From: Dimorphilus gyrociliatus
Taxonomy: Eukaryota; Animalia; Annelida
Direction: 5' to 3'
Assembly (NCBI GenBank): GCA_904063045.1
Contig: CAJFCJ010000008.1
Span: 1 to 64,000, forward strand
DNA: 64,000 nt
A program made the position numbers and the translations under genes. Positions 14,079 through 38,934 of the stretch are shown here, in pieces. The number at the start of each line of letters is the position of its first letter. The stretch's first letter is position 1. The notes below the pieces were generated by a model. It ran no database searches. It was not told where the DNA came from and saw only the letters and a list, made by a program, of their open reading frames with translations.

Positions 14079-16329
14079 ATGGCATCAATTTTGCAACTGG
14101 AAGAATTTGCATTTATATGTGTTCTAAAAAACTTTAAAAATCTGCAAAAAAATCCATGCTTTCTTCAGTTTATTGAGGACGGAAAACTTTCTCCGGGAAT
14201 GTTTGAAAGATTATTCAATGGACTCAACAGTTTCTATGCTGGAATACCTGAAGACTTCTTAAAACTATTTACTAAATATAATTATTATTTAAATGAAGTG
14301 AGATTCAGTGATGAAAACATGCAAAGTAAAGAATCTCTGAAAATTCTGAAACAAATACATATCCAAAATTTGAACATTGAGTCTCTGAAATTGGTAACGC
14401 TTGAGGAACTAATGGATTATGTAAATGAAGATGAATTAAAAGGCCTATCAATTCATGGATGTAGATTTTTACCTGACAAAAAGCTTGTGGAGCAAGTTGA
14501 GGGACAAGCAGGAATTTCGTATCCTGAGTTTCTGAAGGATTATCCTTCTCTTAAAAATTTGACAAAATTGAATGTTCAATATACTTGCATGAAAAACATT
14601 CAGTTTTTTTTCATTACAAAAGAAATTCGCAGCTTGACAGATGTTAATATTAGCGGTACTTTCATTTCTGATATTCGCCTCTTGAAAAAACAAACCAATC
14701 TGCAATATCTTAACTGTTCTGATCTGAAATCCAGCGCTAAAAAGCATTTTATTCATCTGCATTGTCTGAAGAAACTTGAGCGTCTAAGGTTTGGCAATTG
14801 GTCTATGTACAAGCGTGGAGGAAGAATTTCTTGGTCAAACGAGATCAATTTACAAATTGCAAAGTTTTTGACCAGAGAAGAAAAAGTAGAATACATTGCA
14901 GTTCCAGAGCGATTTCGATCAAAGCATAGTTGGGATATTTCTGAATTTCTAACTTTAGCTGGTTGGAAAAATTTGAAATTTTTTGACTTGGTAGGAGATT
15001 GGGAACCCTCCTCGTCAAGTGTTCTGTAAATTACAAATAATATATTTAACTTGAATAATTTATAATCGCTTGTTCTTTCACAGAAAATTTATTACCAATC
15101 ATAGTAAACTAAAATATTTCGGGATACCATCAACATTGGATAGCGTTTCAATTAACTCCGATATAAGAAGAAACATTTCTGATTATGGTGTAAGTTTAAA
15201 TAGATTTTTTACGAAAAAGAAACCATTGAAAAATTTTTTTCAATATCTTAGGACATTCGCCGTTATGAAAGGATCCATGGAAGAAATGAAATGTCACTTT
15301 TGATATTATATGATGAGGAGGGCCACCCTGTCCATAATTGTGAACTAAGAGACGCTTACGATGCTAATGCATTTGTATTTGACAATTATGGAAATATTGC
15401 TATTCCTGATTTAGAGAAGTTTAAAAATAATTATTCCAGCGAAAAGAATTTAGAGCTTTGTGAAGTAGATTCTTTGTTTTTTCACGTAAACGTATATTTA
15501 CATTTATCTCTTTCTCTTAATAGCAACTAGCAGAGGAATTGTTATTTGAAAAATACATTTACTTTGGTTCTAAACTTATTTTTGGTGAAGCATGTCTAAA
15601 AATTCTCTGTTTGGATATTATGAAATCAGAACACTTTTTGACAATAATTGAGCTGATTGCTGAAACATATTTACATAGATATAACTATTTGACTGAACCT
15701 ATAGATTTTTTATTTATAGTAGTTCTTGAAAAATATAACAGCTATTTCAAAATGGTTAGTAAAATAAGATAAGTTTTTATAAGGATTTAATAATTATTGA
15801 TTTATTTTTTAATTTTCCAAAGGTATCGAACGTTAGCCTAATCTATCGGAGGATATTTACGGCACCTGAATCATACGGAACTTTTCAATCCTATTATAGT
15901 CTTATTTACTATTTAACAAGCTTTCTTAGTCAATTAGACTTTGCTAAAGTAAGTAATTTGAATGATGAAGAAAAATAAAGATATAAAATAAATAAATTCC
16001 AGATATCAAAGGAAGAATTAGTTGGCCTTTGTGGAGGAATGAAAAGGATACAGTTTTGGAAGAGAATAGATCAATGTGAAAAATTATACAAACGGTTTTA
16101 TATTATATTAATAAATATACTTAATGCCTGCAAAGAAAGATTTGGGTGGAATATGAGAAATTTGCCAAAATACTTTGATCCACTCATAAGAAAATCATCA
16201 GATAGATATTTTAATCAGCGTTTACACCAACAAATAGCCAAGTATAATAACTACGATGAACATGAATTCGATGAAGAGAGCCCATCTGAAAGTGAAGATT
16301 CTATTGATTTTCTGTTAAACTTATTTTAG
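14079..16329 (+). CDS. LRR array copy 1: putative ZER1/ZYG11-like BC-box/Cul2-box LRR protein, 649 aa
   Basis: Exons 14079-15025, 15084-15189, 15252-15464, 15524-15754, 15823-15948 and 16003-16329 total 1950 nt with no internal stop. LRR core LKNLTKLNVQYT..LTDVNISGTFISDIRLLKKQTNLQYLNCS; acidic tail. The gene model is solid; the family assignment is inference. Confidence 0.85.
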
Positions 16330-17025
16330 ATAAACGCTTAAAGTATATGAAAATATAGTTTCATTTTTTATAACGAAAAAGTGTTTTTTAGTATCTTAAC
16401 TTAGTATATATAGTTTCTCTTTACATCTTTCACGACTAAACGATACTTTAATGATCGTACTTTATCAAAATACCATAAAAGTTACTTTATTAAGTATTGT
16501 ACTACATAATACCCCATGTTTATATTGCTCTTTCTATTTACACATTCTATGGAAAAAATAAAAGATCACGATGAGTCGACGACTTCATTTTGAAAGTACT
16601 TCAATGGTGTCAAACTTTCAAAAAGGTAAAATATTCTTTTTTCTCATAATTATTTAAGAGATATGCAAATTAGTATGGAATATACATTAAATATTAAAAG
16701 CTGTATATTTCTACCGAAAAATAAAGTTTGAAAAATTTAACCATTAAAAACCAGTTTACAGTACTGCCATCTAAAATTCGGATACAGTTTTTCTTGTACA
16801 ATTAATAACAAAGAATAGGTAAAAAGGCAAATTATACAATTAATATACGATTAATATATTCTGCATCTAGCAGTAAAATAAAAAATTAATTTTAAGATAC
16901 TTTTTTATATTTTTTTAAGAGAAAAAAATTTTTTTAAACGGAAATGTCAACGGTAAATATTCAATTACAGGACCAGACTATTCTATTGATAGAACGTTCT
17001 TCATATAGAAGTTTGGTGTTTCGCA

Positions 17026-19283
17026 ATGCCGTTGGTTCTAAGATTTGAAGATCAGGTGTTTTACTACATTCTAAGAAATTTTAGGAGTCTGATGAAGAAT
17101 TTATCTTTTCTTCGTTTGATTAAAAATAAGACAATTCCACCTTCAATGTGCGATAGAATATTTAACGGACTAAATATTTTTTATGCTGGAATTCCTGGAG
17201 ATTTCTTAGAAATGTTCACCGTTGATAAAATACAATTAACTCATATAAGATTTGGCGATCAAAATATCAAGAATAAAAATTTCATGAAATTTTTAATAGA
17301 TCAAAAGCTCCAAAATCTTACTATTGAACCTCAGAAAATAATGGCGGTTGAAGAATTGTTGGGGTTAATAGACAGCGAACATTTAGAACAATTCGCTGCT
17401 CATTATTGTGAATTTTTACCGATGAACAAATTATGCAAAGAAAATCGAAAGAGACAACTAAAACATACGCGAAAGAAGAGTTTTGTATTTTCATGGCCAT
17501 TTCCTCCACTACGAAATTTAACTGTTTTAAATGTTTCGGAATCTCCGGTAGACAATCTTCAATTTTTTTTTATTACTAAAGAGTCTCAGCATTTGGTAGA
17601 TGTTAATATTTCTGCCACAAGTATTACTGACCTTCGACTCTTGAAAAAGCAAACAAAACTCCAATATCTCGATTGTTCTGGAATGAATTCTTCAATAGAA
17701 AAGAGTTATATTTATCTCCATTGTCTAAAAAATTTAAAATGTCTTACTTTTGGACAGTACTTTCCAAATAAATCAAAATTCAGGTTAACGTGGTTGAAAG
17801 AAGTCAATCCAGTGATACAGAAATATCTTACTGTAGAAGAATTAGAAGCCTATAGAGAAGTTCCTCAGCAATTTAAAACAAAGCGTAGTTGGAATATATC
17901 GCAATTCTTAAGACTTGCTCATTGGAAAGATATAACTTTTTTTGAGCTAATAGGAAAATGGAATCCCTCTCCGAGTAGCGTTAGGTAGGCAACATCTAAT
18001 TCCATAAAATTTTATAAAAAGTACATTTCATACTATCTCTGTCCAGTGAATTCATTAACAATCATCCTAAGCTTGAATTTATAAGCTTATCAAAAAATTT
18101 TCCAGAATGTTTAAATACAAGTTTAAAAGTCAAAAAGAAAAAGATGAAAGACATATTTGTGAGTATGAAAGTATTCTCTAAGATTTTTTATTGAACTAAA
18201 TTTTTAACCTCTTTAAACATATAGAATATTCATAACTACGAAAAAGTGTATGGCAGGAATGATATGTCGTTTAGAATCATCCACGATGACGATTCTTTTC
18301 CTATTGATCGTCTAAATATTGATGATATCGATATTATGTACCATTCAATAGATTTCCATGATGAAATTGTGCTTCCAAAAGTAAATGAGTATAAAAAGAA
18401 CTTTCCAAGAGAAAGACGGGAGGAATTTTGTCAAGTATCTAAATTATTATGTTTTTCATGTTTCTAATTTAACTTAATTTATTTCTTATCAAACAGTACC
18501 TTGCAAAAGAGTTAACTTTTGAGAAGTTCAGCTTTTCTGGTATTGAAAATCTTTTGAGCGATGAATGTCTATTAATTTACTGCCTTGATATTGAAAAGTC
18601 TGATCATTTTTTGACGATTATTACTCTGATAGCGGAAAAGTTTTTACAAGCTTATTCTTATATATCCAGTCCATTGGGATATATCTTCTTTGAAGTTCTT
18701 ACGAAATATCATCAATATTTCAAAATGGTTTGTAAAATGATGCAGATACTTGAGAGTGATTTAATATATCTTATTTTCCTAAGACAACTAACATCAGCCT
18801 TGTTTATAGGAAGCTATTTGAGGATCCTGATTTATATTTTTACGATTTTGCATATCAAGATCTGATGAGATGTTTAATAAAATTTATTGATCATTTAGAT
18901 CTTGATAAGGTGAGCAACTTACGACTTCGTTAAAACTACTGATAACTTGTATATTTTAGATGTCCGGAAAGGATCTAGCTGGTCTTTGCAGAGGTATAAG
19001 GGACATAAAGAAATGGTCCAGAACAGAGTTGTTCAATGACTTTATTCCTAAACTTCACGATACACTGCAAAAAGTTATTAAGCACTGTAAGAACAAGTTC
19101 GGATGGGATATGACAAAAGTAGAAAAAAGTATTGACTACATAACAGCATATTGCACTTCGGGAGCTATTCCTGAGCATGATGACGAGATGACTGATGATG
19201 ATGATGATGATGATGAAGCTATTTTAAATACCACTATGTGCACCACTGATAGTGACGATTGGGATGTAATTGAGACGAATTGA
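17026..19283 (+). CDS. LRR array copy 2, six exons
   Basis: Same exon phases as copy 1 and intact when spliced. N-terminus LRFEDQVFYYILRNF..IPPSMCDRIFNGL; tail ends DSDDWDVIETN. Confidence 0.85.
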
Positions 19284-19921
19284 ATATAGAAAATATATTT
19301 GTTTGTATGTTAAATGTTCATATAAGTTTTTATTTAAGGAATAGTAATTTTACCAGATAACATCTGCTGATGATTCTACACGTGTGTTTAAATCTATTAT
19401 AGTGCCAAAAACAATTTTTCTTTTAAGGTAATGACTGTGGTATTTGATAACATTTTTAAATATTTTATTTCTAAATACTATCTTATTTAATTCAATTCTA
19501 TTTGTTGAATTTCATTGTCATCGGAAGGTCATACACGTAACAAAATAGTTCGAACTACTTTAATTATTTTTTGAGCCATTGCGCATAGTCCTATAAGCTG
19601 AATATACGATTTAAACCAAAACTCAATGGAGTAGGTATAATCTGCACACTGGAAAATTAAGTTGTTTATTGCATTTCAAGACTAGGCGGAATTATTATCT
19701 CTGAAGTAGATTCTTTGAATAATTGAATAATTTTTAACAGGAATAAGTAAAATATTTATTTTTGTAATATGGAAAAGTCCATGTATATCCTAGTTTTCAA
19801 AAATATCTAATAACACAAATTAAATTTACTTGAAACTCCCTGATAGTTTAGTCCCTGCACGAATATTCCTACGCAAGAACGTTAAATAGTTCCACTTTGG
19901 TTATTTTTTGTATTAGGAAAA

Positions 19922-22134
19922 ATGGCTATGTTAACACTAGAAGACGAGGCATTTGTTTGCCTTCTACGAAACTTTAAAGACTTGCAGAATAATCATACAT
20001 TTCTTCAGCTCATTAAAAGTAGAAAAACTCCAGTATTCTTCTGCAATAAAATATTCAACGGATTAAATAATTTTTACGGTGGAATGCCAGAATCATTCCT
20101 TTCTTCATTCTCTAAAGATAATTTTCAGTTAAGTGATGTAAACTTCGGTGATCAGAATATTAAAGATAAGAAATCCTTCGAATTTTTAAAAGATCATAAT
20201 ATACAAAATTTGAGTGTTGAATTGGTTGGAGAGATATCAGCTGAAGAATTTATTACTTTCATTAACTGTGAAAGTTTAAAGAGATTTTCGGTAAGCGCAA
20301 ATAATTTTTTCCGCGATCCAGACGTTAGTGAAAAAAAACGAAATAGGAAAAGAAAACGTAAGAGCTTTCCCGTCAAGCCTGAATTCATACGGAGTTCACC
20401 TCCATTTCGAAACTTAACAGCACTAAATATACCTCATGCATTGGTAAATAATATTCAGTTTTATCATATTACACGGGAAGTATTGCAGTTGGAATTATTA
20501 AACATCTCTGGGACACTTATAACGGATATACGTCTTTTGAAACGGCATAAAAATATGTACCATCTCGATTGTTCTGAACTGCAGGAAAGTTGCTATAAGC
20601 ATTACATTCATCTTCATTCCTTGAAGAAATTGCAACATTTATATTTGGGTAATTCAACTAAAAAAACAATTGACTTATCTTTTGGTTGGTCAGACAATAT
20701 ATGTGCATCATTATGCAGTCTTCTCAGCGAAAATGAACTTGAAGAGTATAAGGAGGTTCCTATCCAATTTCGTTCAAAAAACAATTGGGATATTTCAAGT
20801 TTCTTAGAGTTAGCCGATTGGAAAGATCTGACAATTTTTGCTATACTAGGAAAATGGAATCCCTCAAACAAAAGTATTTGGTAATCTATAAATTTTCTAA
20901 ATGTTTATCCTCAATAACTAAGAGATTTTTATTTTGATAGCAATTTCGTTAAGAATCATCCTAGGCTGGGATATTGTCAGTTTATAGATCAGTCAACGTC
21001 CTTTCTTGAATCAGATAATGCAGACGTTGACGTTCTTGCACGATTAAGTGTAGGTTATATACTTTTTATAATAAAAATATTGTTTAATGGTTGTATCTTT
21101 TCTATAGGATCTACATAGCTATGAAAGAGTTTATGGAAGGAATGATATCTCATTCAAAATTACTAATGCTATTGGCTTTTTGCCCGACAGTATCCTGTCA
21201 ATAGAAAAAGATAATGAACTTCAGGATGATTTTCACGAAGCTTTTATAGAACCAAAGGTAGATGAATATATAAAAGAGTTTTCTAAAGAAAATCATTGGC
21301 AACTTAGTAGAGTAAGTATAGTATTCCTCTTTTTTATTGCTCAAATTATCAGTTACTCATCCTAGCTCCTACTTGACAAATTGGAATTTGAAAAATTTAG
21401 TAACTTTTATTCAGAAAGTGGTTTTGGCCAAACTTGCCTTAATATTCTTTCTGTAGATATAGAAAACTCAGACTGTTTCTTTCAAATCATTCAAGTGATT
21501 GCTGAAACGTTTTTAAAAAGATTCTTTTATATTTGCTGTCCGATTGATTATCTCTTTTTGGAAATTCTAGAAAAATATCACAAATACTTCAAAAAGGTTT
21601 TAGCAAAAATTCCTCATCAACTTCCATTAATTCTTTCTATTTTTTTTAAAGGCAACAAACATTTGTCTTATTTACAAGAGAATATTTGTTAGACCTGATT
21701 TAATCGACTATACTTTTGGATACTATAGTCTTATTAAAGGTTTAACGAAATTCCTGGAAAATTTGGATTATGAAAATGTCGGTAATTTTTATTTTGAAAA
21801 CAGAAGAATAAAATAACTTTACCACTTACTTTAGATGTCAGAGATAGAAATGTACAGTCTATGCAAAGGTACTAAAAGAATAAAGCACTGGAAACAATGG
21901 AATGAATGCGAAGCGATAACCCAGAACCTTTATGTTGCTATATTAGCAATTATAAATTATTGCAATAAAAAATTTGGCTGGGATATGAAAAATATTGTAA
22001 AGAGTATTAGACCACTTCGCAGACGATTTGACAGCGAATGCTGTGGTCTTTGCGAGTACTTTTCAGATGATGATGAGGATAGCGTAAGAAAAAATAGTTT
22101 GTTTAGTTACGAGACAGCTTCAGAGAGTGAGTAG
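19922..22134 (+). CDS. LRR array copy 3, six exons
   Basis: Intact when spliced. LTLEDEAFVCLLRNF; basic insert KKRNRKRKRK; the exon 5 donor is GTCGGT at 21778. Confidence 0.85.
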
Positions 22135-22950
22135 CATCTAAAAGATACGAATAAGATGTATGAATATAAGTTTAGATTGTCTAATCAGTTGAAATAAATA
22201 GAAATTTTTACATTTTCTTATAATTTTATAGATTTATTTTCATACATTTAGATACATATGAACAATCTAAATCATTCAATTTGAAAAATATATACAGTAT
22301 ATATATATGTTTATTCTAAAGCAATGACGTTGAATAAAAGTTGTTTATACATACGATTCATTTCATATTTGGCGCTTTGTGTAAAAAACAATTTGTCAAC
22401 TCTAAAAGATACATAACTCAACTTTTTTCGTCATCTCTTTTTTGGGCAATTCTTAGGTTGCACTATAGTTTTACATAACAATTAGATAACAATGACGGAG
22501 CGAGTATCGGTAATCTACTTACGATCAGAGCTACTTTAGAAGTTTTATTCATTTATTACTTAACTGTAAAGTAAAGTTTGCTCATTATAATTGAAGTTTT
22601 CCTTATTTCTTTAGTTTTAAATGATAACGAGCAACCTTCGAATTGCCTCAAAAGCGAAAGAAAAATAGTTGGTTAATATATCCTCTAGTGTGCCCCAATA
22701 TCTATTGCCCAGTTAATTTATACTTCCGCTTCCGCAATACTATTTGAAGGAATATCAACGTAAAAAACAACAAATTTGTATGTTATAAGAGTAAGCTTAA
22801 TTAATTAAAATTGTTCAAATCAAATATTTGAAATATTTCTTTTAGCTACATCGTTTATTTTTGTTATTCAAGGCTTAATCAACTCGTTTCGTTAGTAAAT
22901 ATTATTTACTGGCCATTGAATTTAGCCTAATATGTTGCGCCTTTTTCAGG

Positions 22951-25203
22951 ATGGCCATAATCCTGAGACTTGAAGACCAAGTCTTTTATTACATTTTAAG
23001 AAATTTTGGTTATCTAAAAGATAAAACCATATTTCTCAAATTGTTTAAATTGAAAAATATCTCACCAATGATGTGTGAAAAAATATTTAATGGACTGAAT
23101 ACTTTTTATGCTGGAATGCCAAGGAATATCTTCGAAGCTTTCACTACTAAGAGTATTCCTTTAAAGAATGTAATTCTATGTGACGAAAATCTTGATCATA
23201 AAACTTGTAGAAAGTTCTTAAAGAGGCATAAATTTCAAAGTTTAAAAATTCAATTGCTGAAGCATATTTCAGTGGAAGAGTTAGTTGAACTAGTGGACAA
23301 TAATGAATTAAGAGTATTGGGTATTCATAATTGCTCATATATACAAAAAAGTGAGCTGAATTCTAATTTGAAAGGGAAGAAAGATATTGTTGAAAAGTTA
23401 AATCTTAGATTTTTGAAGAATCCACCTCAGCTAAGAAATTTAACTGTATTAAATATATCAAATACAAGCATTGATGATATTCATTTTTATTGCCTTACAA
23501 GAGAAGTATATCATTTAGAAGATGTGAATATAGCTGAAACTCATATTACAGACCTAAGACTGTTAAAAAAACAAGAAAATCTTCAATATCTCGATTGTAC
23601 CGAATTGAGTTCTGATGTTGGTAATAGCTATATTCATTTACATTGTCTTACGAGACTAAAACGATTGAGATTCGGCAATGCTAATCAAGCAAAAACCAAT
23701 CTAAAATTGGCTTGGTCACATGAAATCCATCCGTTAATTATGAGCTATTTAAATGAAAACCAAATAAAGCAGTATAAAGGAGTTCCCGATCAATTTCGTT
23801 CGAAATGTAACTGGGATATTTCAGCTTTCCTAGAATTAGCAGACTGGAAAGATTTATTGTTTTTTGACCTATGCGGATCTTGGGCACCATCTCCAAAAAG
23901 CGTATGGTAGATCATTTACAATTGTTCATTAAGTAAACTAAATTAGTATGTAAATGGTATTTTAATTTTCTATAGTGATTTCATCCAGAGACATGGTGAA
24001 CTTCGATTTATAAAGCTGTCTGAAGACTTTCCAGATATTCTATATAGGTCTATAGATTTCTATAGAACTCTCAAGGATCTATTTGTAAGTTGAACAGTTA
24101 ATCAGAACAGTATTCTTTATTGATTTAATAATAAAAATATTTAGGATATACATCACTATGAAAGGATCTATGGAAGAAATGAGATGTCGTTTCGAATTCT
24201 GTTCGACGATCAAACTTATCCGGTTGATCCTTTCGAGGTTGAAGGAGCCGGTAGTGCTTTTGATGACTTTCCTACAGATTATCACGAAACTGTTGTTATT
24301 CCAAAAATAATTGAATTTAGAGAGAGCTTTCCAAAGAAGAGTCGGCTGGAATTATGTCAAGTAAGATATTCAATTGGCGTTATTAACACCAATAACTAAT
24401 TATAAGCTTTATTAGTATTTAACAGATGAGATGATGCTCGAAAAGTTTAATTCAGACTATTCGGAGTATCCTTTGGGTGAAAAGTGCCTACAAATTCTTT
24501 GTATGAATATTGAAAGATCGAGCCATTTCTTAACATTAATAACGTCGATTGCCGAAAAATTCTTGCAAAAATCATCGTATATTGGCGGTCCAATAGATTA
24601 TACGTTTATAGATGTTCTAACTAAATATCATAGATACTTTAGACTGGTTTGTAGTATTATTACTTAATTAATTTTTATTCACTATTTCATTAATAAAAGG
24701 TTACGAATATAAAAGAAATTTATGAGAGACTCTTTACTGAGCCTGATACGCATGTTTACGGTTATGGATATTATTGTCTTATTAAAAGTTTAATATGTTT
24801 TCTTGAAGAGTTGAATATTAAAGAAGTATATTAATCTTATTTACAAATAATTGTTATCATAATATTCTAAAAATATCGATTTCAGATGCCAAAAGATGAG
24901 CTTCGCAGTTTGTGTAAAGGTATCAACAAGACTAAATCGTGGAAACAGTGGGCTGAATGTCAAGAATTAAGCGAGAGACTCCACTTTCTTATCATCAACA
25001 TTATTAGTTTTTGTAAGAAACTCGGTTGGAATATGAAACAGTTAGAGAAGAATATTAAGCCGCTTACACGAAAATTTGAAAAGAGAGGTTCTTTCTATGT
25101 TCAATATTATCCGGGTGAAGAACGTGGTTTGGATGAAGAAATTGAGTCCGATGAAGAATGTGAAACTTACACTGATAACGAAGATTGGGATGTGCATAAA
25201 TAA
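22951..25203 (+). CDS. LRR array copy 4, six exons
   Basis: Intact when spliced. LRLEDQVFYYILRNF..ISPMMCEKIFNGL; tail ends DNEDWDVHK. Confidence 0.85.
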
Positions 25204-25478
25204 CTTTTGTTAAAGTAATAGTAATAATATTAATAATTGTAATGATATAAATATTGATTATTGACAGAATTAATAAATAACTAGCACGAAAATAATAAAA
25301 ATTTAGAAAATTTGTATTGTTTATTAGTATCTTAATCTAATTACAAAAAATACTAAAATATGCAGTACATATGTAAACAAATTAATATTTTATGTTTTTC
25401 TTAATTTATGGCATTTTTCAACGTTTTAGCCAAATTTTTTTGGATATAAAACTTCAAAACCGTATTTTACCTTTTTAT

Positions 25479-25536
25479 CGGAAATGACTACACTTAAAAG
25501 TTTAGTCCGGAACTAGTTATTCCCGCCATTACGTAG
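25479..25536 (+). promoter_or_regulatory. Conserved promoter cassette of the LRR array (copy 5 instance)
   Basis: CGGAAATGACTACACTTAAAAGTTTAGTCC (25479-25508) matches 28602-28631 at 26/30 and 34985-35014 at 21/30. CCCGCCATTACGTAG (25522-25536) recurs with small variants at 14012, 32033 and 35021. Confidence 0.7.
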
Positions 25537-25576
25537 TAGTCCTTCGTCATTGTTTACTGCTTAACAAAAGTTGGTT

Positions 25577-27843
25577 ATGGATGCCATGTTATCTTTAGAA
25601 GATTTGGTTTTTTACTGCATAATTAGAAACTTTGAAGACTTGAAAGATAATCCTTTTTTCTTGAAACGCCTACGGCAAAAAATCATTCCGCCAGCTATCT
25701 GTAACAAATTGTTTAACGGATTGAATAGCTTTTATGGAGGAATTCCAGAAGTTTTCGTTGAAGCTTTTACCTCCAATAATTTTCAATTAAACAGTGTAAC
25801 GTTTAGTGATAGAAATATTGATGATGAAAAATGCATTGAAATTTTCAAAGATCACGAGATTAAGCATCTTAATCTGTTTCAATTGGGTTTGTTAACTGTG
25901 GAAGATTTTTTTGAATTTGTTGATTTTCAAAAATTAGAATCTTTATCGATTAATTACTGTCAAGCTTTATCATGCAAGCAATCGTTTACAAAACCAAGAA
26001 AGACTGAAACAGATGAACAGCCTGATACATCGTTCGTGAATTTTCTGGTAAAGTCTCCTCCTCTACACAACCTGACAAAATTAGACGTATCAAATACAAA
26101 GATAAAAGATATTCAATTTTACTTCATTACTAGAAAAGCTGAATTTTTGGAGGATATTAATATATCTGATACATATATAACTGATCTTCGATTGTTGAAA
26201 AAACAATCAAATCTTCAATATCTAGATTGTTCACAACTCAGCAGACTTGCAAGCCGCCAATACATACATCTTCATTGTTTGACGAAATTGAAACAATTGC
26301 GTTTTGGTTTCCATTCAAAGAAAATAGCAAAACTTCGATTGGGTTGGAATACTGAAATTAATCCTCTTTACAAAGATTTAATTAGTAAAGATGATTTAGA
26401 AGATTTTATTAGCGTTCCTGACGCATTCAAATGCAGACAATTTTGGAATATTTCAGAGTTTTTAGTATTGGCTGACTGGAAAGATTTGACCTTTTTCGAT
26501 TTAGTTGGAAGATTTGAACCTTCTGATAAAAGTATTTGGTAAGAATCATTAGATTAATTAAAATTACAAGTGTTTAATAGAATTAATGTTTTTTTAGCCA
26601 CTTTATAAGACAGCATGATAAACTGCTATATTTTGGGACACGTTACGATGAGTTAGATATTGACCGGCTGTCTTTGGAAACTAATAGAAATTTAAGAAAG
26701 TTAATGGTATGTCAACAACAAACAATTGTAATAAGGAATTAATATATTCTTTTTGTATTACTATATTAGGATATTAATTACTATGAGAGAAAGTTGAGCA
26801 GAAGCGAAATGTCATTTAGGGCATTGTATTCGAATTATACTCCATCGAAAAATCCGTTCAAACTATCGTATTTTGAACACGATATGGAAACAACCGAAAT
26901 TGTTTTTAAGCATGTTGTAATCCGTAAAGTGAATGAATACAAGCAGAACATTCCTAAATTGAAGAACTTGAGACTCTGTCAAGTAAATCGTATTAATTAA
27001 TTTTAATCTATTTATCCCTTATTTAATATTCATATTTTTATAGATACTTGCTGATGAACTTGTCCATTCGAATCGTTACCTAAGTTCTTTGAACTTTGAC
27101 CTAGGTAACGCATGCTTAAAAATTCTTTGCTTGGATATTGACAAATCAGAGTATTTTTTTACAATACTTTCGCAAATTGCTCAGATATTCTTACGCAAAG
27201 ATTTCCGTTTTGCAAGCTCCATACATTTTACTTTTATAGAAGTTTTGGCAAAGTATAAAAAATCTTTCAGAACGGTTTGTACAATTGATCTTTTTTTGCT
27301 TATTCAGCTCATTTGTTGATTATATATTTAGGTAACAAACATCAACTATATTTATAAGAAAATATTCAAAATTCCATGTTTGAAGAACAATGAAGGATAT
27401 TATCTTTATTATAGTTTCTTTGCGTTTATAAAAAGTTTGATCAAGTTTCTCGAAGATATGGATATTGAAAGTGTAAGCGGAATTTGGGAAGAGGGAAAGA
27501 GAATAATTTTGAATAATAAACATCTTCTTTTCAGATGTCGCCAAAGGAATTAAAATATCTTTGCTTAGGTATGAAGAATATAGCGAAATGGAGAGAGTGG
27601 GAGGGATGCGAAGATCTTATTAGGAGACTTCGCACTGTTGTTTCCAAGATATACAACTATTGCTCACAGAAATTTAATTGGAATATATCATCCTTAAACT
27701 ATGAATCAACCCCATTTAAACGAAAGTTTATTCTTAGGGGTATTCAACAGTGGACAACCGAAAGTGGAGAAGAGTACGATGATGAATTCTCATGTCTGGA
27801 GCAAAGTTCTAGTGAAGATGATGACTGGAGCACGGAAAAGTAA
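25577..27843 (+). CDS. LRR array copy 5, six exons
   Basis: First true ATG at 25577 (the ORF track starts at a TTG). SLEDLVFYCIIRNF..IPPAICNKLFNGL; intact when spliced; tail EDDDWSTEK. Confidence 0.85.
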
Positions 27844-28697
27844 TTTGTCGTTTACATTCAATATTATAGTGTATTATTTTATTGTTTTGAATTATATTTT
27901 GAAATTAATTGTGTCATATTGATCAGTTTTCCATTGTAGGTTGTAGACGTATTATGCAATTAATTCAATTTTTCTATTCAAAATTTATAAAATTTTCTCA
28001 AATATCATAAATAAACAACATTTTAGATATTCTAATGTTACTTTACGCAAAAAATATTCATTTTTTCATTCTATTCAGCACTTTTCTTTTCTTTTTTAGG
28101 AAATTTCCTTTATTATCAACTATTTTCTATTGTTGTTGAGCAATAAATGCTTAATTTATTAAAATATTTCACAGATAATAATTAATATTTAAAAAGTTGA
28201 ACAACAGCCATTTTGTTTAACGAGATTTTTCGAAAACTTCGTCACAACTTTCAAGGATTCTTCCGAGAATCCAAAAAATTTATCTGCATCAAAAACAATA
28301 TATAAATATTTTATTTAAAAAGATAGAAAGGAAAATAAAATATTAATAATTTATAGAATGTTCGGTAATTTTAAGTGAACTTTTTCTGTTGAGTACTTTA
28401 CATCACTAATGCCACCTATTTAAAAAAAGTTCCAGTTGTTGTCTAAAGTTTTATATATAGATATATGTTTTTTTTGCATTAATAAATTAAGTATAAATAC
28501 ATTTTTTTAATTTATAAAAAGTTAACAAAATAATAGAATTTAATTATTTATGTATCTTTTGTATTGTTTTATTGTAATATTATCTAATTAGCGGTTTTGA
28601 TCGGAAAAGACTACACCTAACATTTTAGTCCGCGACACCTACGAATCAAGGCACTTTTTTAGAACACGTCATGAGGTATGTATTAATTACCTAAAAC

Positions 28698-31571
28698 ATG
28701 CGGGCTATATTTAGACTCGAGGATCAAGCGTTTCATCATGTTATGAAACAATTGGATAATTATAAAGATGAATACTCGTATATTGAATATTTGAAGAATA
28801 GAAAAGTTCCTCCAGTAATCTGTGATAGATTATTTAATGAACTCAATGGTTTCTATGCTGGCTTACCTGATGATGTCATAAAAGTATTTGCCAATGATGA
28901 TTTTCCACTAAACAATATTAGATTTGGTGATACTAACTTTAGAAATGACGCGTCAATTGAATTTCTAAAATGTCATAAGCTCAGAGGTCTAACTATAGAG
29001 AATCTCGAGTTGACAACAATTGAAGAATTATTGGATCTTATAAATTGCGAAGAATTGAAGACGTTGTCATTTCATCATTGTAGGTTTTTGTCAAGAAATC
29101 AGTTATATACCGAAGTTCGGAAGAGGAAGAGGAAACGAACGTTAAAGTTGGATTTTGAGTTTTTGAGGGGTTTTCCACCATTACGAAACTTAACAAAATT
29201 AAATGTATCGAACACTGAGATAAATGATGTTCAGTTTTTTTTCATTACCAGAGAAGTTCATCAATTTGAAGATGTGAATATCAGTGAAACGTCTATCACT
29301 GATATTCGCCTATTAAAAAGACATGTCAACCTTGAACATCTAGACTGTACTGAGCTTATAGATAACGCTTGTAAAAGTTATATCCATCTTCATTGTTTCG
29401 TCAAATTAAAGAGACTGAGATTTGGTAATTCTTCCTCAAAAATAAAAAAACTACAAATGACATTGATAAATCAAATTAATCCTCTAATTAAAAAGTTTCT
29501 AACCAAAGAAGAAATTGAGAATTATAACGAACTTCCTGAACGATTTAAGTCAAAGAGAAAATGGGATTTAACTGAATTTATAGAATTATCCTATTGGAAA
29601 GATTTATCATTCATCGACATACTCGGTGAATCGATACCTTGTCCAAGAAGTGTTTGGTAATTTTACAACTATTATTAAATTCAATATGTTGAATAGTTTG
29701 TTCTATTATTATAAAATCTTTTCCATAACAGTAATTTCATCGCTAGACACGAAAAACTTGAATTTGTTGGCTTAACTGAAGAATTTCCAGATATTTTAGA
29801 ACGATCCGTAATTGAACATAAAAACGTGTATAACTTATTTGTAAGTGTATTAATCTGTAATAAAGAACAATATATTGGTTAATTTTATACTGTAACTTTC
29901 AGGATATTTGCCATTTTGAGAAGATTTATGGCAGAAATGACATGTCATTTAAAATTCTTTATACAAAAAAAAATTCTAATATTGACCTTCGTGAAATTTG
30001 GAATAGTAATGATATTTCTTATAACGAAATGAGAAGTCCAGTTATTTTTAGGAGATTGGCAAGAAACCATCATGATCATTATGTTATAGAATGCCATTCG
30101 GAATTAACAAGAGTATGTTGTCAATTTAAAAAAAAATCAATGATTTACTTATTATTTGCTTATACATATATATTTATATATAAATATATACTGTATATAT
30201 ACAAATACTGTATGTGTAATAGATTCTTGCGGATGAATTGGCGTTCGAAAAGTTTAGCTTTTACACTCGACAAACCTGCTTTGGTGAAACTTGTTGGAAT
30301 ATTCTTTGTACAGATATTGAACAATCGGAATGCATAATTGTTATTGTTAAATTGATTGCCGAGAGATTTTTACAAAGAGATTTTTATCTGAGTGATCTAA
30401 AAGATTCATCGTTTATGGATTTACTTACGCAATATCATAAATATTTCAAAATGGTTATTTCTTTTTCTTTTCCAATTTAAATTATGTTTCTTTATGTATT
30501 TATCTTTTGAAGGCTACAAATATTAATTATATCTATCGCAAAATCTTCGATATTCCTGAAAAGAATAAAGATGATCTTGATACATGCTTCACTAATTACA
30601 GTTTCATGAAGATATTAGTTATATTCCTTGGACAACTGAATTTAGAGCAGGTAAGTTACTCAAAAAAAATTCATTTAATTTTAATGAAAAAGTTAAATAC
30701 ATACATATTTTAGATAACGAGAAACGAATTGGATGGTCTCTTCAGAGGAATGAAGAGGATAAATAGATTAAAGCATTGGAAAGAATCTCAAGATTTACTT
30801 GAACAATTACATGTTACAATGTTGCAGATTATGACATACTGCTCAAATAAGCATGGATGGGACCTAACTGAATTAGAAAACTATATCGAGCGACGATTGA
30901 TAAGATGTAAGTTTATATGCACCGGTTCAACTTCAGTTTATTTGCAGGATGACAATGAATCGGATGATTCGTATGACTATAATTCTGAGTATTATGTCAA
31001 TGGGGGAGAAGAGGAAGAATATGGAGAAGAAGAGGAAGAAGACTACGAGGAAGGAGACTACGAGGAAGAAGACTACGAGGAAGGAGACTACGAGGAAGAA
31101 GAGGAAGGAGGAGTCGAACAAGAAGGAGAAGCCGACGTAGAGTTTGATGACGCAGATGAGGAGGGAGAATTCGAACAAGGAGAAGAAGAGGAAGGACAGG
31201 AGCAGGGAGGATATGAGCAAGAAGAGGAGGAGGAATATGAGCAATTTGAAGATGAGGAAGAATATGAGCAAGGAGAAGAGGAGGGAGAATACGAGGAAGG
31301 AGAAGATGAGGAAGAATATGTGCAAGGAGAAGAGGAGGGAGAGTACGACAAAGGAGATTTTGAGCAAGGAGAGGAGGAAGTACAAGAGATTATAGTTAGA
31401 GGAGTACAAATAGAAGTGATTGAAGAAGAAGCCGAAATTGAAGAAATGGAAAGAGAAGAGGGAGGTGAGTATATAGAAAACAATACTCACAATGGTCAAT
31501 ATATTCAAGAAGTGGAAGTCAGGGAATTACCATTAGACGGAGCCGAAAGTGATAAAGGCGATGTAGAATAA
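28698..31571 (+). CDS. LRR array copy 6, six exons, with expanded Glu-rich tail
   Basis: Intact when spliced. RLEDQAFHHVMKQL..VPPVICDRLFNEL; RKRKRKR insert; the last exon carries about 190 extra mostly acidic codons. Confidence 0.85.
30990..31550 (+). repeat. Coding low-complexity Glu/Gly/Tyr repeat expansion
   Basis: GACTACGAGGAAG(G/A)A x4 at about 31041-31100, followed by degenerate EYEQGEEEG-type units. The frame stays open to the stop at 31571. Confidence 0.9.
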
Positions 31572-32074
31572 TTTGAAGTAGAATTATTTGAATATGAATA
31601 GAATTACTAGAGTACGAATTTCAATTCATTTTTAGTATTAAAAATAGATTTATATACTTAGTTCAACTTGTCAAAAATTTTTAAACTATAAATTAATATT
31701 ATTCATAATCTATAGAGCAAGTTTAGTAATTACTATTTTAATATTATTTGTTTGTTCATTGTATGTGTATTAAAGTATGTGGTGCCATTTTCCCAAAAGA
31801 TTTCTTTGAATAAATATTTCTCTTCATATTAAAAAAAAACACAATCTCCACTTTTTTTTTATAAAAAGTTAATATATAGAAAGTGTTTTAGCTACTATTT
31901 TTGGAACAATTAGTATTCTATATTTAAACTATTCGAGAAGATTTCTATAATTTACAGAATACTCTTCTTTTATATATTCGATATGTCTAACAAATATTCC
32001 CGATTTATCCGAAAATAGTCGTCGAAACGTTTCCCGCCATTTCGTAGATTGTTATTGATTGCTGATATTTCGTA

Positions 32075-34423
32075 ATGGCTTTTATGATGAGATTGGAGGA
32101 TTTGGCGTTTTATAACGCTGTAAAGCTGTTTGGAAGTTTTAAAAAGGAATCATCTTTTATTGATTTTATCAAGGAGAAAAATATTCCGACTCTTATGTAC
32201 GACAGACTTTTTAATTCTTTATACAAACATTTTATCGGAGTACAAGGCGACATTTTGAAAATGTTTGTCGTTGAAAATTTCCCGCTAAGCAATATAAGAT
32301 TCGGCGATGCAAGACTAAAGTGTGACGAATCTATAGAGTTTCTAAAAGACCATAAGCTTCAACATCTTAGGATCGAACAACTCACATCGATGACCGTCGA
32401 GAGTCTACTTGAATTTATTGACGTTGAGAAGTTACAGACCTTATCTATAAGTAATTGTGCATTTTTACCGGAAAAACTCCTCGTTACAAAGTTAGCGAAG
32501 AGGAAAAGGGAGCAAAGAGAACAAAAAGAAACTAAAAAGTTTGAATACTTAAGAAAATTTCCTTGTTTAAGAAATCTTACTTCTCTCAATTTATCGAATA
32601 CTGAACTAAACGACCTTCAGCTATTTTTCATAACGAAAGAAGTTAACCTTCTAGTGGAAGTAAATATTGCTAAAACCAACGTAACGGATATTCGATTATT
32701 GAAGAAACAAACCAATCTTGAAAGTCTCGATTGTTCTGAATTAAAAGAAAGTGTTGGTCGTACACTCGTTCATCTACACTGCTTTGAAAAGTTGAGATTC
32801 TTAAGATTTGGTAACTCTACTCCAAGTCAGAGAATTGGTTGGTCCTATAACGTTAATCCCTTTATAAGGAAATATCTAAATCAAGAGGAGTTTTTAGCCT
32901 ATAGAAAAGTTCCGCAAAGATTTAAAACAAAGCTGAATTGGAGTATGTCCGAATTTTTAAGATTAGCCGACTGGACGGATTTAACATTTTTTGATTTACA
33001 TGGAAAATGGAGAATATCCCAAAAAAGTTTAAAGTATTATTTAAATAATTAATTATTCCATAATTTGAATAATTTATTCATAATTTTTTCTATTATTATT
33101 AATAATAGAGAATTCATTACGACACACACGAAACTACGATTTATAAGATTCTTTAAGGACTTCAGTCAAATTTTGAGAACAATTTTGCCAAGCGATAAAA
33201 TAGTTGAAGATTTACTTGTAAGTAAAATGATTGTTTATCATCAATAATCATCATTAATGATTAGTCCCCTTTCGTTGTTATAGGACATACGTCACTACGA
33301 AAAATTCTATGGAAGGAGTGAATTTTCCCTAAAAGCTCTTCATAGTAGCTATAAATTTCCAGTACAGCCGATTTTACTTAATGCGGACATTGGAATAGCC
33401 TATTGGTACGATTCGCAAATCTTTCACGAACAATACGCCATTCCTGGAATAAGCTTATACAAAGTCAATTTTCCAAAGGAAAAGAGTTTAGAACTATGCG
33501 AGGTAATTATCTTTATTAATTAGCATGTAATGAATAATAATATATACAGTAGATATTCAACTTTTCCATCTTTTTCCAGTATCTAGCAGACGAGTTAAGC
33601 ATAGAAAAATACTGTCAATTCCCCGAACAGTATAATTTTGGATACTTATGTTTAAATATCCTTTGCGCAGATATTGAAAAATCAGATTATTTTTTAATGA
33701 TAATCGAATTAATAGCTGAGAAATTTTATAATAAATTTCCATTTCCTAGTAGTCCATTAGACTACCTGTTTATTGAAGTTCTTGAGAGATATTTGAAATA
33801 TTTTAGAGTGGTTTGTTAAATGAATTCTTTATACGAATAATCTATATATATATATATATATATTTAAGTAACTAGTTTTTCGCATTTGCAGATAGCGAAC
33901 ATAAACTATATCTATAGTAAACTATTCGCCCATCTTACGTCTGATTATAGTGGATCCGACCATTTTACTTTTATTAAGGCAATGTCAAAATTTTTACAAG
34001 AAATTGACCTTGACAATGTAAATTATATCTTAAAAGTAATAACTAATAGAATATTCTCTTATTGATTAATTTTTAATCTTATTTCAGCTACCAAAACAAG
34101 AATTGTACTGTATCTTCAAAGGTTTGAGAAATACTGAAAGTTGGATACATTTAGAAGAATTTGATGTCTTAATCGAAGATTTATATGGTATTCTTTTAAA
34201 CTTTCACGCGTTCTGTAAAGAAAAGTTTGACTGGGATATGGTAAGAGCGGTTACCTACGTTAAACGAATTTACGATTGGAATGTTACCGGATGTCAAAGA
34301 ACATCTTGTACATTCGATAGCGATCTTGACGAAGAAAAATCTAATTCTAGCGGAGATTTGGAAATATTTGAGCCTAATGAAAATAATAGTCTCTTGGAAG
34401 ATGTATTTATATTCTCAAACTAA
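32075..34423 (+). CDS. LRR array copy 7, six exons
   Basis: Exon 1 ends AGT TTA AA|gt and exon 2 starts A GAA TTC ATT. All exons are in frame; KRKREQRE insert. Confidence 0.85.
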
Positions 34424-35068
34424 TAACTAAAAGGAAAACAAAACTTCTTTTCATGCATGTAGTTTATTTTGTATTGTTGTTTTTTTTCATTGTTTACAAA
34501 TAGAAAAATACATTGTTTTTACTTTGAAAACTTCTTAGTCGTTATCTTATTATAAGCTGTGCCGAATGCAAGTCATATGATAGTTATCATACAGTTCGAG
34601 AGTTTCTTATCATCTGAGCGACAATTAAGAGTTGTTTCTTTTTTCAAATATTTTACCTAAAAGAAATATAGACAAAAAATTAATTAATTAACGTTTTTAT
34701 TAAGAAGTCAGAATTTTATTTTTTAAATTAATAAAGAAACAAGAATTTGTATAAAGTGAATAAAAAAAATTAATAAAGCCATTTTTAAAATGTTTGTTTA
34801 AATATATAATAAATATTGCGCAAAATTTAAAAAAACGACATTTCCAAGTTAATAAATCTTTTTTTTAAAGACTCAATTTGTTCTTAGAATTAGTTAAGAT
34901 CAATATTTCATTTTAAAAGAAAATAAACACTAAAATATTTTTAATCGCCATTTTAGAAAAGCTAAAGAGTTGATCGTTAACTTTTGGAATAGTCTACGCC
35001 TAAAATTTTAGTTTCCAAGTCCCGCCATTTTTGGGGACACAGCCGGACAGAGTGAATGTTCTTTCGAA

Positions 35069-37336
35069 ATGCCTATTGTTCTGAGATTAGAAGATCTAGT
35101 TTTCTTTCATATTATAAGAAATTTTACAACTTTCAAAGAACAGGAATTTTTTCTACAACTTTTCAAACAAGGAAAAGTTCCTCCTGTGACTTGCGACAAA
35201 TTGTTTAATGGACTAAATAGATTCTATGGTGGAATACCTGATGAAATTCTCAAAATATTCACAAAAGAAAATTTTAAATTGAGAAATATTACACTAGATG
35301 ATAGTAATATTTTTAACAAATTAACTTCGACTTTCTTAACTGGTCATAAACTTCAAAGTCTAACTATAGAACGTTTGGCAATATGGACGGTTGAAGATGT
35401 TATCGATTTAATAGACAGTGATGAGTTGAAAACATTATCGTGTCATCGTGCTACGTTTTTGCCAGAAAATAAAATATATAAGAAAGTTTTAAAGAGGAAA
35501 AGAAAGCAAGAAACACAAAACTTTACATTTATAAGACAAAGTCCTCGTCTGATAAATGTAACATCTTTATATGTTTCAAAGACGAAAATGAACAATGTTC
35601 AACTATTTTTCGTAACAAAAGAAATGTTTCTAATAGAAAATCTCGATATTGCAGACACACGTATAACAGATCTTCGTCTCTTGAAGAAGCAATCTAATCT
35701 TCAGTATTTAGATTGTTCTGGGTTGAAAGAGTTTGCTGGTAAACACTATATTCATCTTCACTGCCTAAAGAAACTAAAGCATTTAAGATTTGGCAATACT
35801 GAGACAAGATTAACAATGTTACGATTGGGTTGGTCAAGTATAATAAATCCTGTTATAAGACAGAATCTCAATGAAGAGGAATTCAAGGCTTTCAGTTCTG
35901 TCCCTGAACAATTTCGTTCCCGATCAACCTGGCATATGTCAGAGTTTCTAGAGTTGGCTAATTGGAAAGATTTGAGGTTTTTTGATTTAATTGGAAAATG
36001 GAAATCTTCTCCAAAAAGTATCAGGTAAATGGAGTACTTGCTGATATTATAAATTTAATATATTAATTTATTATTATTAAAATAATTTTCTTTTTAAGCG
36101 AATTTATTCGAAACCATAAGAAACTGAAATATTTTGGATTTTCAAAAAACTTCACAGATGATTTGAGCGCACATATGGAAATAACGAAGGAGGTGAAAAA
36201 TTTGTTTGTAAGTTTTTAAGTAAAATCTAATATTTTTATAAATGATAGAAAATTTCAATTTGTTTCCAGGATATCAAATTCTATGAAAAGTCATACGGTA
36301 GAGATAATATGTCATTTAAAGTGTATCATAAAAAAATTTCGTTCCCTGTTGATATTGTTGATCTTCCTGTTGATACTTATGTATCAGATGTGGAAGAAAC
36401 TTTTTCTAATGAAATTATACCAAGCTTGAACCGATACAAAGAAAATTTTCCGAAGGAAAACCATTCAGAATTCTGCAAAGTAAAATATTTAAGCGAATGA
36501 AAGCCACACTCATTGAAATTTTTTTTACAATAATACCATTTTTACAGCTTCTTCTTGATGAATTAAAGTTCAAAAGTATGAACTTTCGCAATACTGCATG
36601 CGATATCGGTGAAATATGTTTGAGAGCTCTTTCTATGGATATTGAAAAATCGGACCATTTCCTACCGATTATTCAGCTGCTGGCTCATATTCTCTCATAT
36701 AGACATTCATATCCAAATAGTCCTTTAGATTTTATTTTTATGGAAATGCTAACGAAGTATTTCAGATATTTCAAGATTGTGAGTGAAGTATTGCTAAAAA
36801 CTTATTGTTTTAGGTCAGAAGCAATTCATAGTCATTTTATCATATTTTTAGGCTATAAATTTACCGGGCATTTTCAAGAAAATATTTATTGTTCCGAGAG
36901 AATCTGATCTACACAGTTATTACATGTCTATGGAAAAGATATTGGCATTTTTAGAAAATATCAACTTGGAAGACGTAAATAATTTGTCTTGATTAATGAA
37001 GGAAATTTTTTACAGTTTATTTTTTTTAAATAGATGTCGCAAAGCGAGCTTTCCGCTCTCTGTTTGGGAACTAAGCAAATTAAAAGTTGGCACAATGGCG
37101 TAGAATGTGAAGAATTAGCCAAAAAATTATATGAAACTATTATGAAAATTATCAATTATTGTACAAAAAAATTTGGATGGGATTTGTCAAAATCAAAAAC
37201 GTATCTTAAACCACTTACAAAGAAATTTGCTCAAGGATGTACTGGTGTCTATTCTTATTATTCCGGAGAGGAGGATCAATCAAATGATGAATTTCGTTGC
37301 TTTTATGATACGAGTACAGATAATGATGATTGGTAA
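35069..37336 (+). CDS. LRR array copy 8, six exons
   Basis: Intact when spliced. RLEDLVFFHIIRNF..VPPVTCDKLFNGL; KRKRK insert; ends DNDDW-stop. Confidence 0.85.
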
Positions 37337-38000: not shown

Positions 38001-38633
38001 TTATATATAAACATTTTCTCCTCCAGATTCATCGTCAGTAACGATACTTAGTTCATCTGAACCAGAGGTGGAGGAATCTTGTGTTAGAATTCTTTTACGA
38101 ACTTCCATAAGTGCTTTTCCAAGTAAATTACGTCCTTTCCAATTTCTTTCATCAGCAATATTTGGATCAGTAATTTTCATTCCTATTCCCCAAATTCTAT
38201 CACTTGGACTTGCTTCTGCTAAATGAATATTCTTAGTTGATATAATGTAATCCTTTAATGTGTTGTTCTGACTAAATTTATAATAATTTCCTTGAACAAC
38301 AAAATCAAAACAATGATTCTTCCATATTTTATCATCGAAATTTTTCACTTTTCTTCCTAAAGCTTTTATCCTTGGAGGTGCTCTTTCCTTTAGAATTTTC
38401 TCAGCTATAGCATCATCTTTAAACAGACGAGCTTTACAATACATCATATACATTTCAGCACAAGTAAATTTATTTGCACCGTACATATCTTCGCCAGGAG
38501 CTTCGAACTCAGCATTGTAGAATTGACTAAATGGGGAAACTTTCGTATAGAAAAAGCCGTATTCTTTTCCATTTGTCCCTTTAAGAACCTTTAATTCGCT
38601 ATCATTGAGAGTGCAAATACCTCCTGTTGCCAT
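38001..38633 (-). CDS. NADAR-family (YbiA-like) N-glycosidase / ADP-ribosylhydrolase, single coding exon, about 210 aa
   Basis: Motifs FSQFY, AEMYMMYCKARLFKD, IKALGRKVKNFD, KFSQN, EASPSDRIWGIG and WKGRNLLGKALMEVR are characteristic of NADAR. Likely start MATGG at 38633. Confidence 0.92.
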   Translation of the reverse strand: MATGGICTLNDSELKVLKGTNGKEYGFFYTKVSPFSQFYNAEFEAPGEDMYGANKFTCAEMYMMYCKARLFKDDAIAEKILKERAPPRIKALGRKVKNFDDKIWKNHCFDFVVQGNYYKFSQNNTLKDYIISTKNIHLAEASPSDRIWGIGMKITDPNIADERNWKGRNLLGKALMEVRKRILTQDSSTSGSDELSIVTDDESGGENVYI

Positions 38634-38934
38634 ATTAGAGATGTTTCGATAACATATCAAGCAGAAATGAATATCGAAAGAAGAGCTATCAGATTATAAA
38701 TTCTTTTATTACACAACCTTTAGAAACACTTCCGTATCCGGTATGGAAGAATGATAGTGAAAGAAAAAGAAAGCATTATTCAACTAATAGTAAAGGGGCG
38801 TATAACGGATATTTTACTTTATGTTAACCAATATACAATAGATTTACGTTTCATTTTAAATAGAATGTATTGTATATACTGTATATATATATAGAAAATA
38901 AGATAATAAGATATAGAAGGAGAAAAATTGACAT

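Follow-up and report, generated by a model that had tools for sequence, protein, structure and literature searches.

The tandem array and its gene models

The window analysed here is a stretch of 64 kb with about 30% G+C from the annelid Dimorphilus gyrociliatus. Between positions 14079 and 37336, on the forward (+) strand, it carries eight paralogous genes in tandem at a spacing of 2.6–3.4 kb, and the present analysis concerns this array and the relationship of its products, which contain leucine-rich repeats (LRRs), to the ZYG11/ZER1 proteins. Each gene opens with a long first-exon open reading frame (ORF) of 316–325 amino acids (n = 8; starts at 14079, 17026, 19922, 22951, 25577/25586, 28698, 32075, and 35069), and these ORFs align end to end with 43–46% identity. 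Five shorter open pieces in changing frame follow 3′ of each long ORF. Enumeration of frame-compatible GT..AG pairs gave one consistent spliced solution per gene, in which every gene has six exons and introns of 50–110 nt, bounded by GT..AG, in phases 2,0,0,0,0, while exon 4 measures exactly 231 nt in all eight genes. None of the eight spliced models contains an internal stop and each closes with a stop codon, the last of which ends at 37336. From gene 1 to gene 8, the predicted proteins have 649, 653, 642, 651, 652 (654), 834, 659, and 643 amino acids.

Gene 1 (14079–16329) consists of exons 14079–15025, 15084–15189, 15252–15464, 15524–15754, 15823–15948, and 16003–16329, and its spliced model can be aligned end to end with those of the other seven genes. 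Gene 2 (17026–19283), which corresponds to the deposited protein DgyrCDS6795, is assembled from exons 17026–17984, 18047–18158, 18225–18434, 18497–18727, 18784–18909, and 18960–19283. It is followed by gene 3 (19922–22134; exons 19922–20880, 20941–21049, 21108–21311, 21366–21596, 21652–21777, and 21835–22134), for which both a model and a spliced contig are available, and by gene 4 (22951–25203; DgyrCDS6796) with exons 22951–23906, 23976–24084, 24145–24360, 24416–24646, 24700–24825, and 24886–25203. Gene 5 (25577–27843; DgyrCDS6797) encodes 654 amino acids when read from the ATG at 25577 (exons 25577–26538, 26598–26706, 26770–26982, 27044–27274, 27332–27472, and 27535–27843); the model that starts at 25583 equals residues 3–654 of the deposited protein with 100% identity. 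The spliced model of gene 6 (28698–31571; exons 28698–29656, 29732–29840, 29903–30112, 30223–30453, 30513–30650, and 30714–31571) has a much extended acidic tail. Gene 7 (32075–34423) was likewise modelled by splicing and comprises exons 32075–33033, 33109–33217, 33284–33502, 33580–33810, 33892–34017, and 34088–34423. The array closes with gene 8 (35069–37336), composed of exons 35069–36024, 36099–36207, 36270–36479, 36548–36778, 36852–36974, and 37034–37336.

The eight full-length proteins are 34–43% identical in pairwise comparison. Once the exons are masked, the region displays no internal nucleotide similarity except for one 30-nt chance match, and a search of the remainder of the window found no further copies of the family. 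Nonsynonymous divergence (dN) between copies lies at 0.48–0.63, and synonymous divergence (dS) is saturated or undefined. The array is hence composed of eight old, intact paralogues which are under long-term purifying selection. The view that these are decaying pseudogenes or transposon-borne ORFs is effectively refuted: 48 exons out of 48 are open, 40 introns out of 40 are bounded by GT..AG, dN is far below the saturated dS, spliced transcripts are present, flanks and spacers lack shared or terminal repeats, and no transposase-type Pfam match was found. A first-pass annotation, made from the sequence alone, had described eight same-strand genes with this spacing, exon number and phase pattern, free of stops and frameshifts after splicing and apparently maintained by selection in view of introns and spacers that do not align. 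It had further quoted the motifs LED..F....RN(F/L), (I/V)PP..C(D/N)(R/K)(L/I)FNGL, ITDLRLLKKQ.NLQYLDCS, and YIHLHCL as well as an acidic tail, all of which are present in the alignments. As models, motifs and coordinates could be reproduced, its description of the locus is right in all checkable details.

Deposited annotation and transcription

When a profile built from the eight first exons was run against a set of 1.84 billion representative proteins, it retrieved 25 of them at E < 1e-30. The models of genes 2, 4, and 5 agree letter for letter (100% identity) with DgyrCDS6795, DgyrCDS6796, and DgyrCDS6797, all three of which are unnamed in the deposit. DgyrCDS6799 (1276 amino acids) is a fusion of genes 7 and 8 from which exon 4 of gene 7 (33580–33810) has been left out; its residues 596–1237 equal residues 1–642 of gene 8. 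The deposited counterpart of gene 6 has 778 amino acids as opposed to the 834 modelled here, with 91% identity. No identical deposited protein for gene 1 or gene 3 was found among the matches of the profile search. Because gene 3 is located between the consecutively numbered DgyrCDS6795 and DgyrCDS6796 and no identical protein was returned, it looks unannotated. The models presented here consequently correct the deposited annotation, in which one gene is seemingly missing and two are fused with a skipped exon.

Two spliced contigs from a single public run of 2017, whose library type is unrecorded, together lack all ten coding introns predicted in genes 2 and 3. That of gene 2 extends from about 16923 to 19555 and also lacks a 100-nt GT..AG intron in the 3′ untranslated region (19425–19524), while the 2218-nt contig of gene 3 starts at 19636 and has five introns removed. 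The simplest reading of the source run is a transcriptome assembly; since the contigs skip exactly the predicted introns, genes 2 and 3 appear to be transcribed and spliced as modelled. The contigs carry no information on expression level.

The genome of D. gyrociliatus is streamlined; it has 14,203 genes, and no more than nine families are reported as expanded, mostly as local duplicates linked to immunity (PMC7854359). The text of that study and those of its supplements that were searched contain no zyg, zer or LRR term, and a literature search combining Dimorphilus with zyg11 found no paper. The genes are deposited but unnamed, and undescribed in the literature searched.

Relationship to ZYG11 and ZER1

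Human ZYG11B, ZYG11A, and ZER1 are substrate receptors of CUL2-based ubiquitin ligases (CRL2) for Gly/N-degrons (structures 9bid and 9lk2). A full-length profile of 26 family sequences, compared with all PDB chain sequences, finds human ZYG11B with an E value of 5e-11. Query and target are collinear, with query residues 38–253 on ZYG11B residues 55–260 and then 300–337 on 270–307, and the alignment opens before the first LRR, where the IPPxxCDRLFNGL helix is placed on ZYG11B residues 55–66 (PQEVADRLLRTM) by HMMER. The other PDB matches of the profile are generic LRR proteins only, and no other non-generic family is found among them. In Pfam, the individual window proteins give only weak matches to LRR_4. 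Over 26 family members, LRR_4 is detected in 25, followed by LRR_Zer-1 (PF25013) as the second commonest family in 10 members, always below its gathering score of 27 bits and with a best E value of 2.4e-4. A language-model feature search with the whole protein returned exclusively ZER1/ZYG11 clusters as top neighbours (0.92–0.93; 184–194 shared features), and word-indexed homologue searches started from DgyrCDS6795 or from the family profile recovered nothing beyond family members and two LRR proteins. The N-terminus of ZER1 (SLMALC...CLRNL...LPSEICDRLVN) resembles that of the array proteins.

An AlphaFold2 model of DgyrCDS6795 (gene 2) was built on the family alignment and reached a predicted local distance difference test score (pLDDT) of 81.6 and a predicted TM-score (pTM) of 0.81. 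The model predicts N-terminal helices, about ten strand/helix LRR units extending to approximately residue 335, a poorly predicted linker at residues 376–383, eleven helices between residues 401 and 613, and a disordered tail. A Foldseek comparison of a spliced protein had been proposed in the first-pass annotation, and here the full-length, monomeric ZYG11B–Elongin B (EloB)–Elongin C (EloC) complex ranks first as the best solved match (9lk2_A, E 1.9e-7, 638 columns). VIA-align likewise places ZYG11B at the top (Z 18.9, 418 residues, covering model residues 2–617), ahead of FBXL17, the best LRR-only protein, with Z 15.5. The best match of a shape search in the ESM-Atlas is the ZYG11A cluster (TM-score 0.55/0.52, 496 residues over 3–633). 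Furthermore, the N-terminal helices superpose on those of ZYG11B, with model residue 2 falling onto residue 13 of a chain whose structure was solved with EloB and EloC. In the model, the overall arrangement of a box, an LRR arc and a helical-repeat domain is thus shared with ZYG11B and ZYG11A, in the same domain order as in human ZYG11B, ZYG11A, and ZER1.

Many of the PDB matches (E 1e-11 to 1e-5) are internalins, ANP32 or designed LRR proteins, and repeat proteins are known to inflate profile scores, as would be expected if the array encoded generic LRR proteins whose likeness to ZYG11 arose by convergence or stems from the repeats alone. Against this, the ZYG11B match is collinear over one long segment whose start precedes the first LRR and continues in a second collinear piece beyond the LRRs, the whole-chain structural match takes in the helical C-terminal half (C-half), and the feature neighbours are without exception ZER1/ZYG11 proteins. 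A generic LRR origin is consequently highly unlikely.

F-boxes start with the pattern LPxE(I/L)L..I. The IPPxxCDRLFNGL motif resembles this start and might mark a degenerate F-box, which would make the array proteins F-box/LRR receptors of SCF (CUL1) ligases. FBXL17, FBXL2, and SKP2 resemble the model in having an LRR arc preceded by a three-helix adaptor box at the N-terminus and are its next-best structural matches (Z 13.8–15.5). These matches, however, cover only the LRR part, ending at approximately residue 390, whereas that of ZYG11B spans residues 2–617 with a higher score; the F-box families PF00646 and PF12937 are absent from the Pfam families listed (25 of 29) when the 26 members are searched at E values up to 10; and HMMER aligns the motif with the Cul2-box helix of ZYG11B. 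As the FBXL proteins also lack an ARM-like C-half, an SCF identity is scarcely credible. PRAME chains occur neither among the sequence matches of the family profile in the PDB nor among the fold matches in Foldseek and VIA, and in contrast to an LRR-only body of the PRAME/LRRC14 type the array proteins carry a helical C-half of about 300 residues.

Because sequence profile, fold and learned features agree, the array proteins are very probably true homologues of ZYG11 and ZER1, as the first-pass annotation had suggested. Compared with human ZYG11B, the sequence of the N-terminal half is collinear and BC-box-like and Cul2-box-like motifs are located at the N-terminus. The array proteins differ in being about 100 residues shorter (642–659 amino acids as opposed to ZYG11B chains of 720–748 residues), in a family-specific basic loop in the LRR arc, and in an acidic, often DDW-ended tail.

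The helical C-half and the acidic tail

The helical C-half of about 300 residues, of which only about 220 are structured, is conserved throughout the family, including distant members at other loci; in sequence it has no significant match to human ZYG11B or ZER1. Its solenoid model matches designed armadillo (ARM) proteins, importins, beta-catenin and PUL domains. Searches with the C-half model in the PDB (Foldseek), with VIA and by shape in the Atlas yielded nothing specific, only generic ARM/HEAT matches or spurious helical ones. A specific assignment to the second domain of ZER1 was considered and rejected as unproven, the structure searches having given generic matches only. The nearest feature neighbours of the C-half alone are ZER1-like_2nd clusters, at only 0.78, which constitutes a lead and no more. 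The first-pass annotation had regarded this region as novel or highly remodelled. The second description holds, there being no significant match to ZYG11B, ZER1 or PF22964, while the first does not: since the model matches ARM/HEAT-type solenoids, the C-half is not a new fold. As modelled, it is a shortened ARM-type solenoid with a rewritten sequence, occupying the place of the degron-reading domain of ZYG11.

The eight copies are most strongly conserved in the central LRRs (0.49–0.60, residues 176–250). Conservation lies at 0.17–0.47 between residues 326 and 600, except for one window of 0.56 at residues 451–475, and drops to 0.13–0.21 after residue 600 in the disordered acidic tail. Such a profile is what a constant scaffold combined with a variable recognition end would give.

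The acidic tails of genes 2, 4, 5, and 8 close with D-D/E-D-W, at most a few residues ahead of the stop codon (e.g., 19240–19283), and those of the remaining four genes have acidic residues followed by hydrophobic ones at the end. In gene 6, an in-frame, E/G/Y-rich mini-satellite (31000–31390, + strand; periods 15, 27, 30, and 54), detected by Tandem Repeats Finder and visible in the ORF translation, lengthens the tail by approximately 190 residues and accounts for a spike in GC skew at 30–32 kb. Within the LRR arc, a low-confidence loop at residues ~139–150 contains basic runs of the KRKRKR type in genes 2, 3, 6, 7, and 8 (e.g., 17440–17475). This loop is specific to the family, resembles a classical nuclear localisation signal and might serve as one, and falls in a gap of ZYG11B in the HMMER alignment.

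Family members beyond the locus

The deposited proteins of D. gyrociliatus include further members from a second set of adjacent genes (DgyrCDS11468, DgyrCDS11469, DgyrCDS11471, and DgyrCDS11472). Together with DgyrCDS8608 and DgyrCDS7398, this gives D. gyrociliatus a minimum of 14 genes, spread over at least two clusters, and the N-terminus of DgyrCDS8598 is possibly another member. Comparable arrays are present in runs SRR23372215-231, whose contigs are more AT-rich (24–28% G+C) and have no nucleotide match to the window. Contig L004 (run SRR23372229, 1–12714) holds at least five members in 13 kb and contig L006 (run SRR23372228, 1–20957) at least six in 24 kb, with the same structure of a long first exon followed by frame-shifted pieces; a thrombospondin-type-1 repeat gene sits inside the array of L006. 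Maximum-likelihood analysis unites the eight window genes with seven sequences from these runs in one supported clade (95/92), within which the closest partners are P0010 for gene 1 (99/96) and P0007 for gene 6 (100/99). Should the runs derive from a different species, some of the array would be older than the split between the two. Judged by these sequences, the family appears unique neither to this locus nor strictly to D. gyrociliatus.

In most metazoans the number of zyg-11 orthologues is one or two, and Caenorhabditis, with 19–37 zyg-11-like genes, some of them in tandem and including zeel-1, is the sole expansion reported there (Seidel et al., 2011; PMC3144186). The nematode expansion, to which the first-pass annotation had pointed as a precedent, is therefore real, and the phenomenon as such is already known. 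Similar to the Caenorhabditis genes, the D. gyrociliatus genes are a lineage-specific, partly tandem set of ZYG-11-like LRR proteins, at least 14 per genome as opposed to the one or two ZYG11/ZER1 copies elsewhere. The annelid copies are, however, much older (34–43% identical, with saturated dS), and the array members have no transmembrane domain. Since the host is an annelid, its expansion is independent of the nematode one.

N-terminal motifs and a possible role as CRL2 substrate receptors

Motifs were counted in 31 family sequences which are 15–57% identical to DgyrCDS6795 in the N-terminal segment. L7 is near-invariant across them and is the sole near-invariant residue within the first 60 positions. 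Around it, a BC-box-like pattern, (S/T/R/K)L-x3-(A/V/T/S)-x3-(I/L/V), occupies residues 6–15 and is found in its relaxed form in 27 of the 31 sequences and in a strict textbook form in 10. The BC box of the ZYG11/ZER1 family, which binds Elongin C, reads (S/T/A/P)LxxxCxxx(A/I/L/V). The Cul2-box pattern phi-P-x-x-phi-x-x-x-phi occurs in 23 of 31 when tested at the level of motif and alignment, and the spacing between the two motifs is almost always 21 residues. In gene 2, the codons of the BC-box-like helix lie at 17041–17070 (+; residues 6–15, RFEDQVFYYI) and those of the Cul2-box-like motif at 17134–17160 (+; residues 37–45, IPPSMCDRI), the latter aligned to ZYG11B by HMMER. At motif level, a putative Cul2 box is present.

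These features are best explained if the family is a lineage-restricted, divergent branch of ZYG11/ZER1 whose members probably still act as Elongin BC–CUL2 substrate receptors with diversified specificity. By analogy with ZYG11B, the N-terminal module would serve to bind Elongin C/B and CUL2-RBX1, and the LRR-ARM body would hold out a substrate to be ubiquitylated. Differences among the eight copies would fall mostly in the C-half, the more variable part, and would thereby affect which targets are recognised. Assembly into a CRL2, the role as substrate receptor and the diversified specificity are all extrapolated from ZYG11B. Roles in innate immunity or degron surveillance, which the first-pass annotation had considered possible, as well as a germline role and a regulatory function of the acidic DDW tail, are speculative ideas.

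Several results weigh against this proposal. The canonical Cys of the BC box is never present and is replaced by A, V, T, or S; in gene 2 the key Leu is exchanged for Phe, and the Cul2-box motif of gene 1 is without its Pro. A profile of the first 72 residues, searched against the PDB, gave chance matches only, with no VHL-box, SOCS-box or ZYG11B chain, a blank result that may be due to the shortness of the segment. Apart from LRR_4, which reaches its gathering score in a few members, all Pfam models stay below theirs, and ZER1-like_2nd (PF22964) is found in none of 26 members even at E values up to 10; because this sequence-level feature of the family fails, the array proteins are filed as a divergent ZYG11-like variant and not as orthologues. 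The C-half profile retrieves no ZYG11B or ZER1 chain from the PDB, although their ARM domains are present there, and its best match (E 0.087) is unrelated. Modelled alone (pLDDT 73), the C-half matches generic ARM/HEAT proteins only, with Z ≤ 8.5. Finally, direct evidence of transcription is limited to genes 2 and 3 and to assembled contigs of a single run of unrecorded type. Of the Elongin-BC box and Cul2 box with which, according to the first-pass annotation, ZER1, ZYG11 and PRAME begin, the array proteins show Cul2-like and BC-like patterns at fixed spacing, whereas the Cys is replaced and the 72-residue profile identifies no known VHL box.

The absence of the BC-box Cys from all members, the strict consensus in only 10 of 31 sequences, the Phe of gene 2 and the missing Pro of gene 1, along with the blank N-terminal profile, would be expected of ZYG11 descendants that have lost their CUL2 function and serve as LRR-ARM scaffolds in another role, their N-terminal motifs being structural remnants. 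A precedent exists in C. elegans ZEEL-1, whose ZYG-11-like part is dispensable for antidote activity (PMC3144186). Against a loss of the CUL2 function stand an L7 that is near-invariant across such dissimilar sequences, the fixed spacing of the motifs, and N-terminal helices that superpose on a ZYG11B structure solved with EloB/C, and this alternative seems unlikely.

Beyond the retention of a receptor role, a more specific and rather speculative scenario may be considered, in which a ZYG11-like ancestor gave rise, independently in dinophilid annelids, to a set of 14 or more CRL2 receptors: the degron-reading ARM domain would have been shortened and rewritten and an acidic DDW tail added, and new, diversified degrons or foreign proteins would be recognised. 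If this is true, the array belongs to one of the few expanded families of a streamlined genome, in parallel to the nematode zyg-11 expansion. The annelid genes represent a second, independent and much older expansion of ZYG11-like genes after that of Caenorhabditis, which suggests that the ligase receptor scaffold has repeatedly been recruited for diversification. The combination of a conserved N-terminal half with a rewritten, shorter C-half would constitute a natural experiment on how the specificity of CRL2 receptors changes.

Neighbouring genes in the window

An Rfam scan of the whole window gave no match. Upstream of the array, a bifunctional Glu-Pro-tRNA synthetase with six WHEP-TRS repeats is encoded in a single intronless frame of 1459 amino acids (8725–13104, +). 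The genes downstream lie on the reverse strand and are unrelated to the array. They include a NADAR-domain protein (38001–38660, −; E 8e-52), a semaphorin-like exon with Sema and PSI domains (46003–47076, −), a VWD-domain exon (52987–53664, −), and an intronless G-protein-coupled receptor of the rhodopsin family (61925–63019, −).

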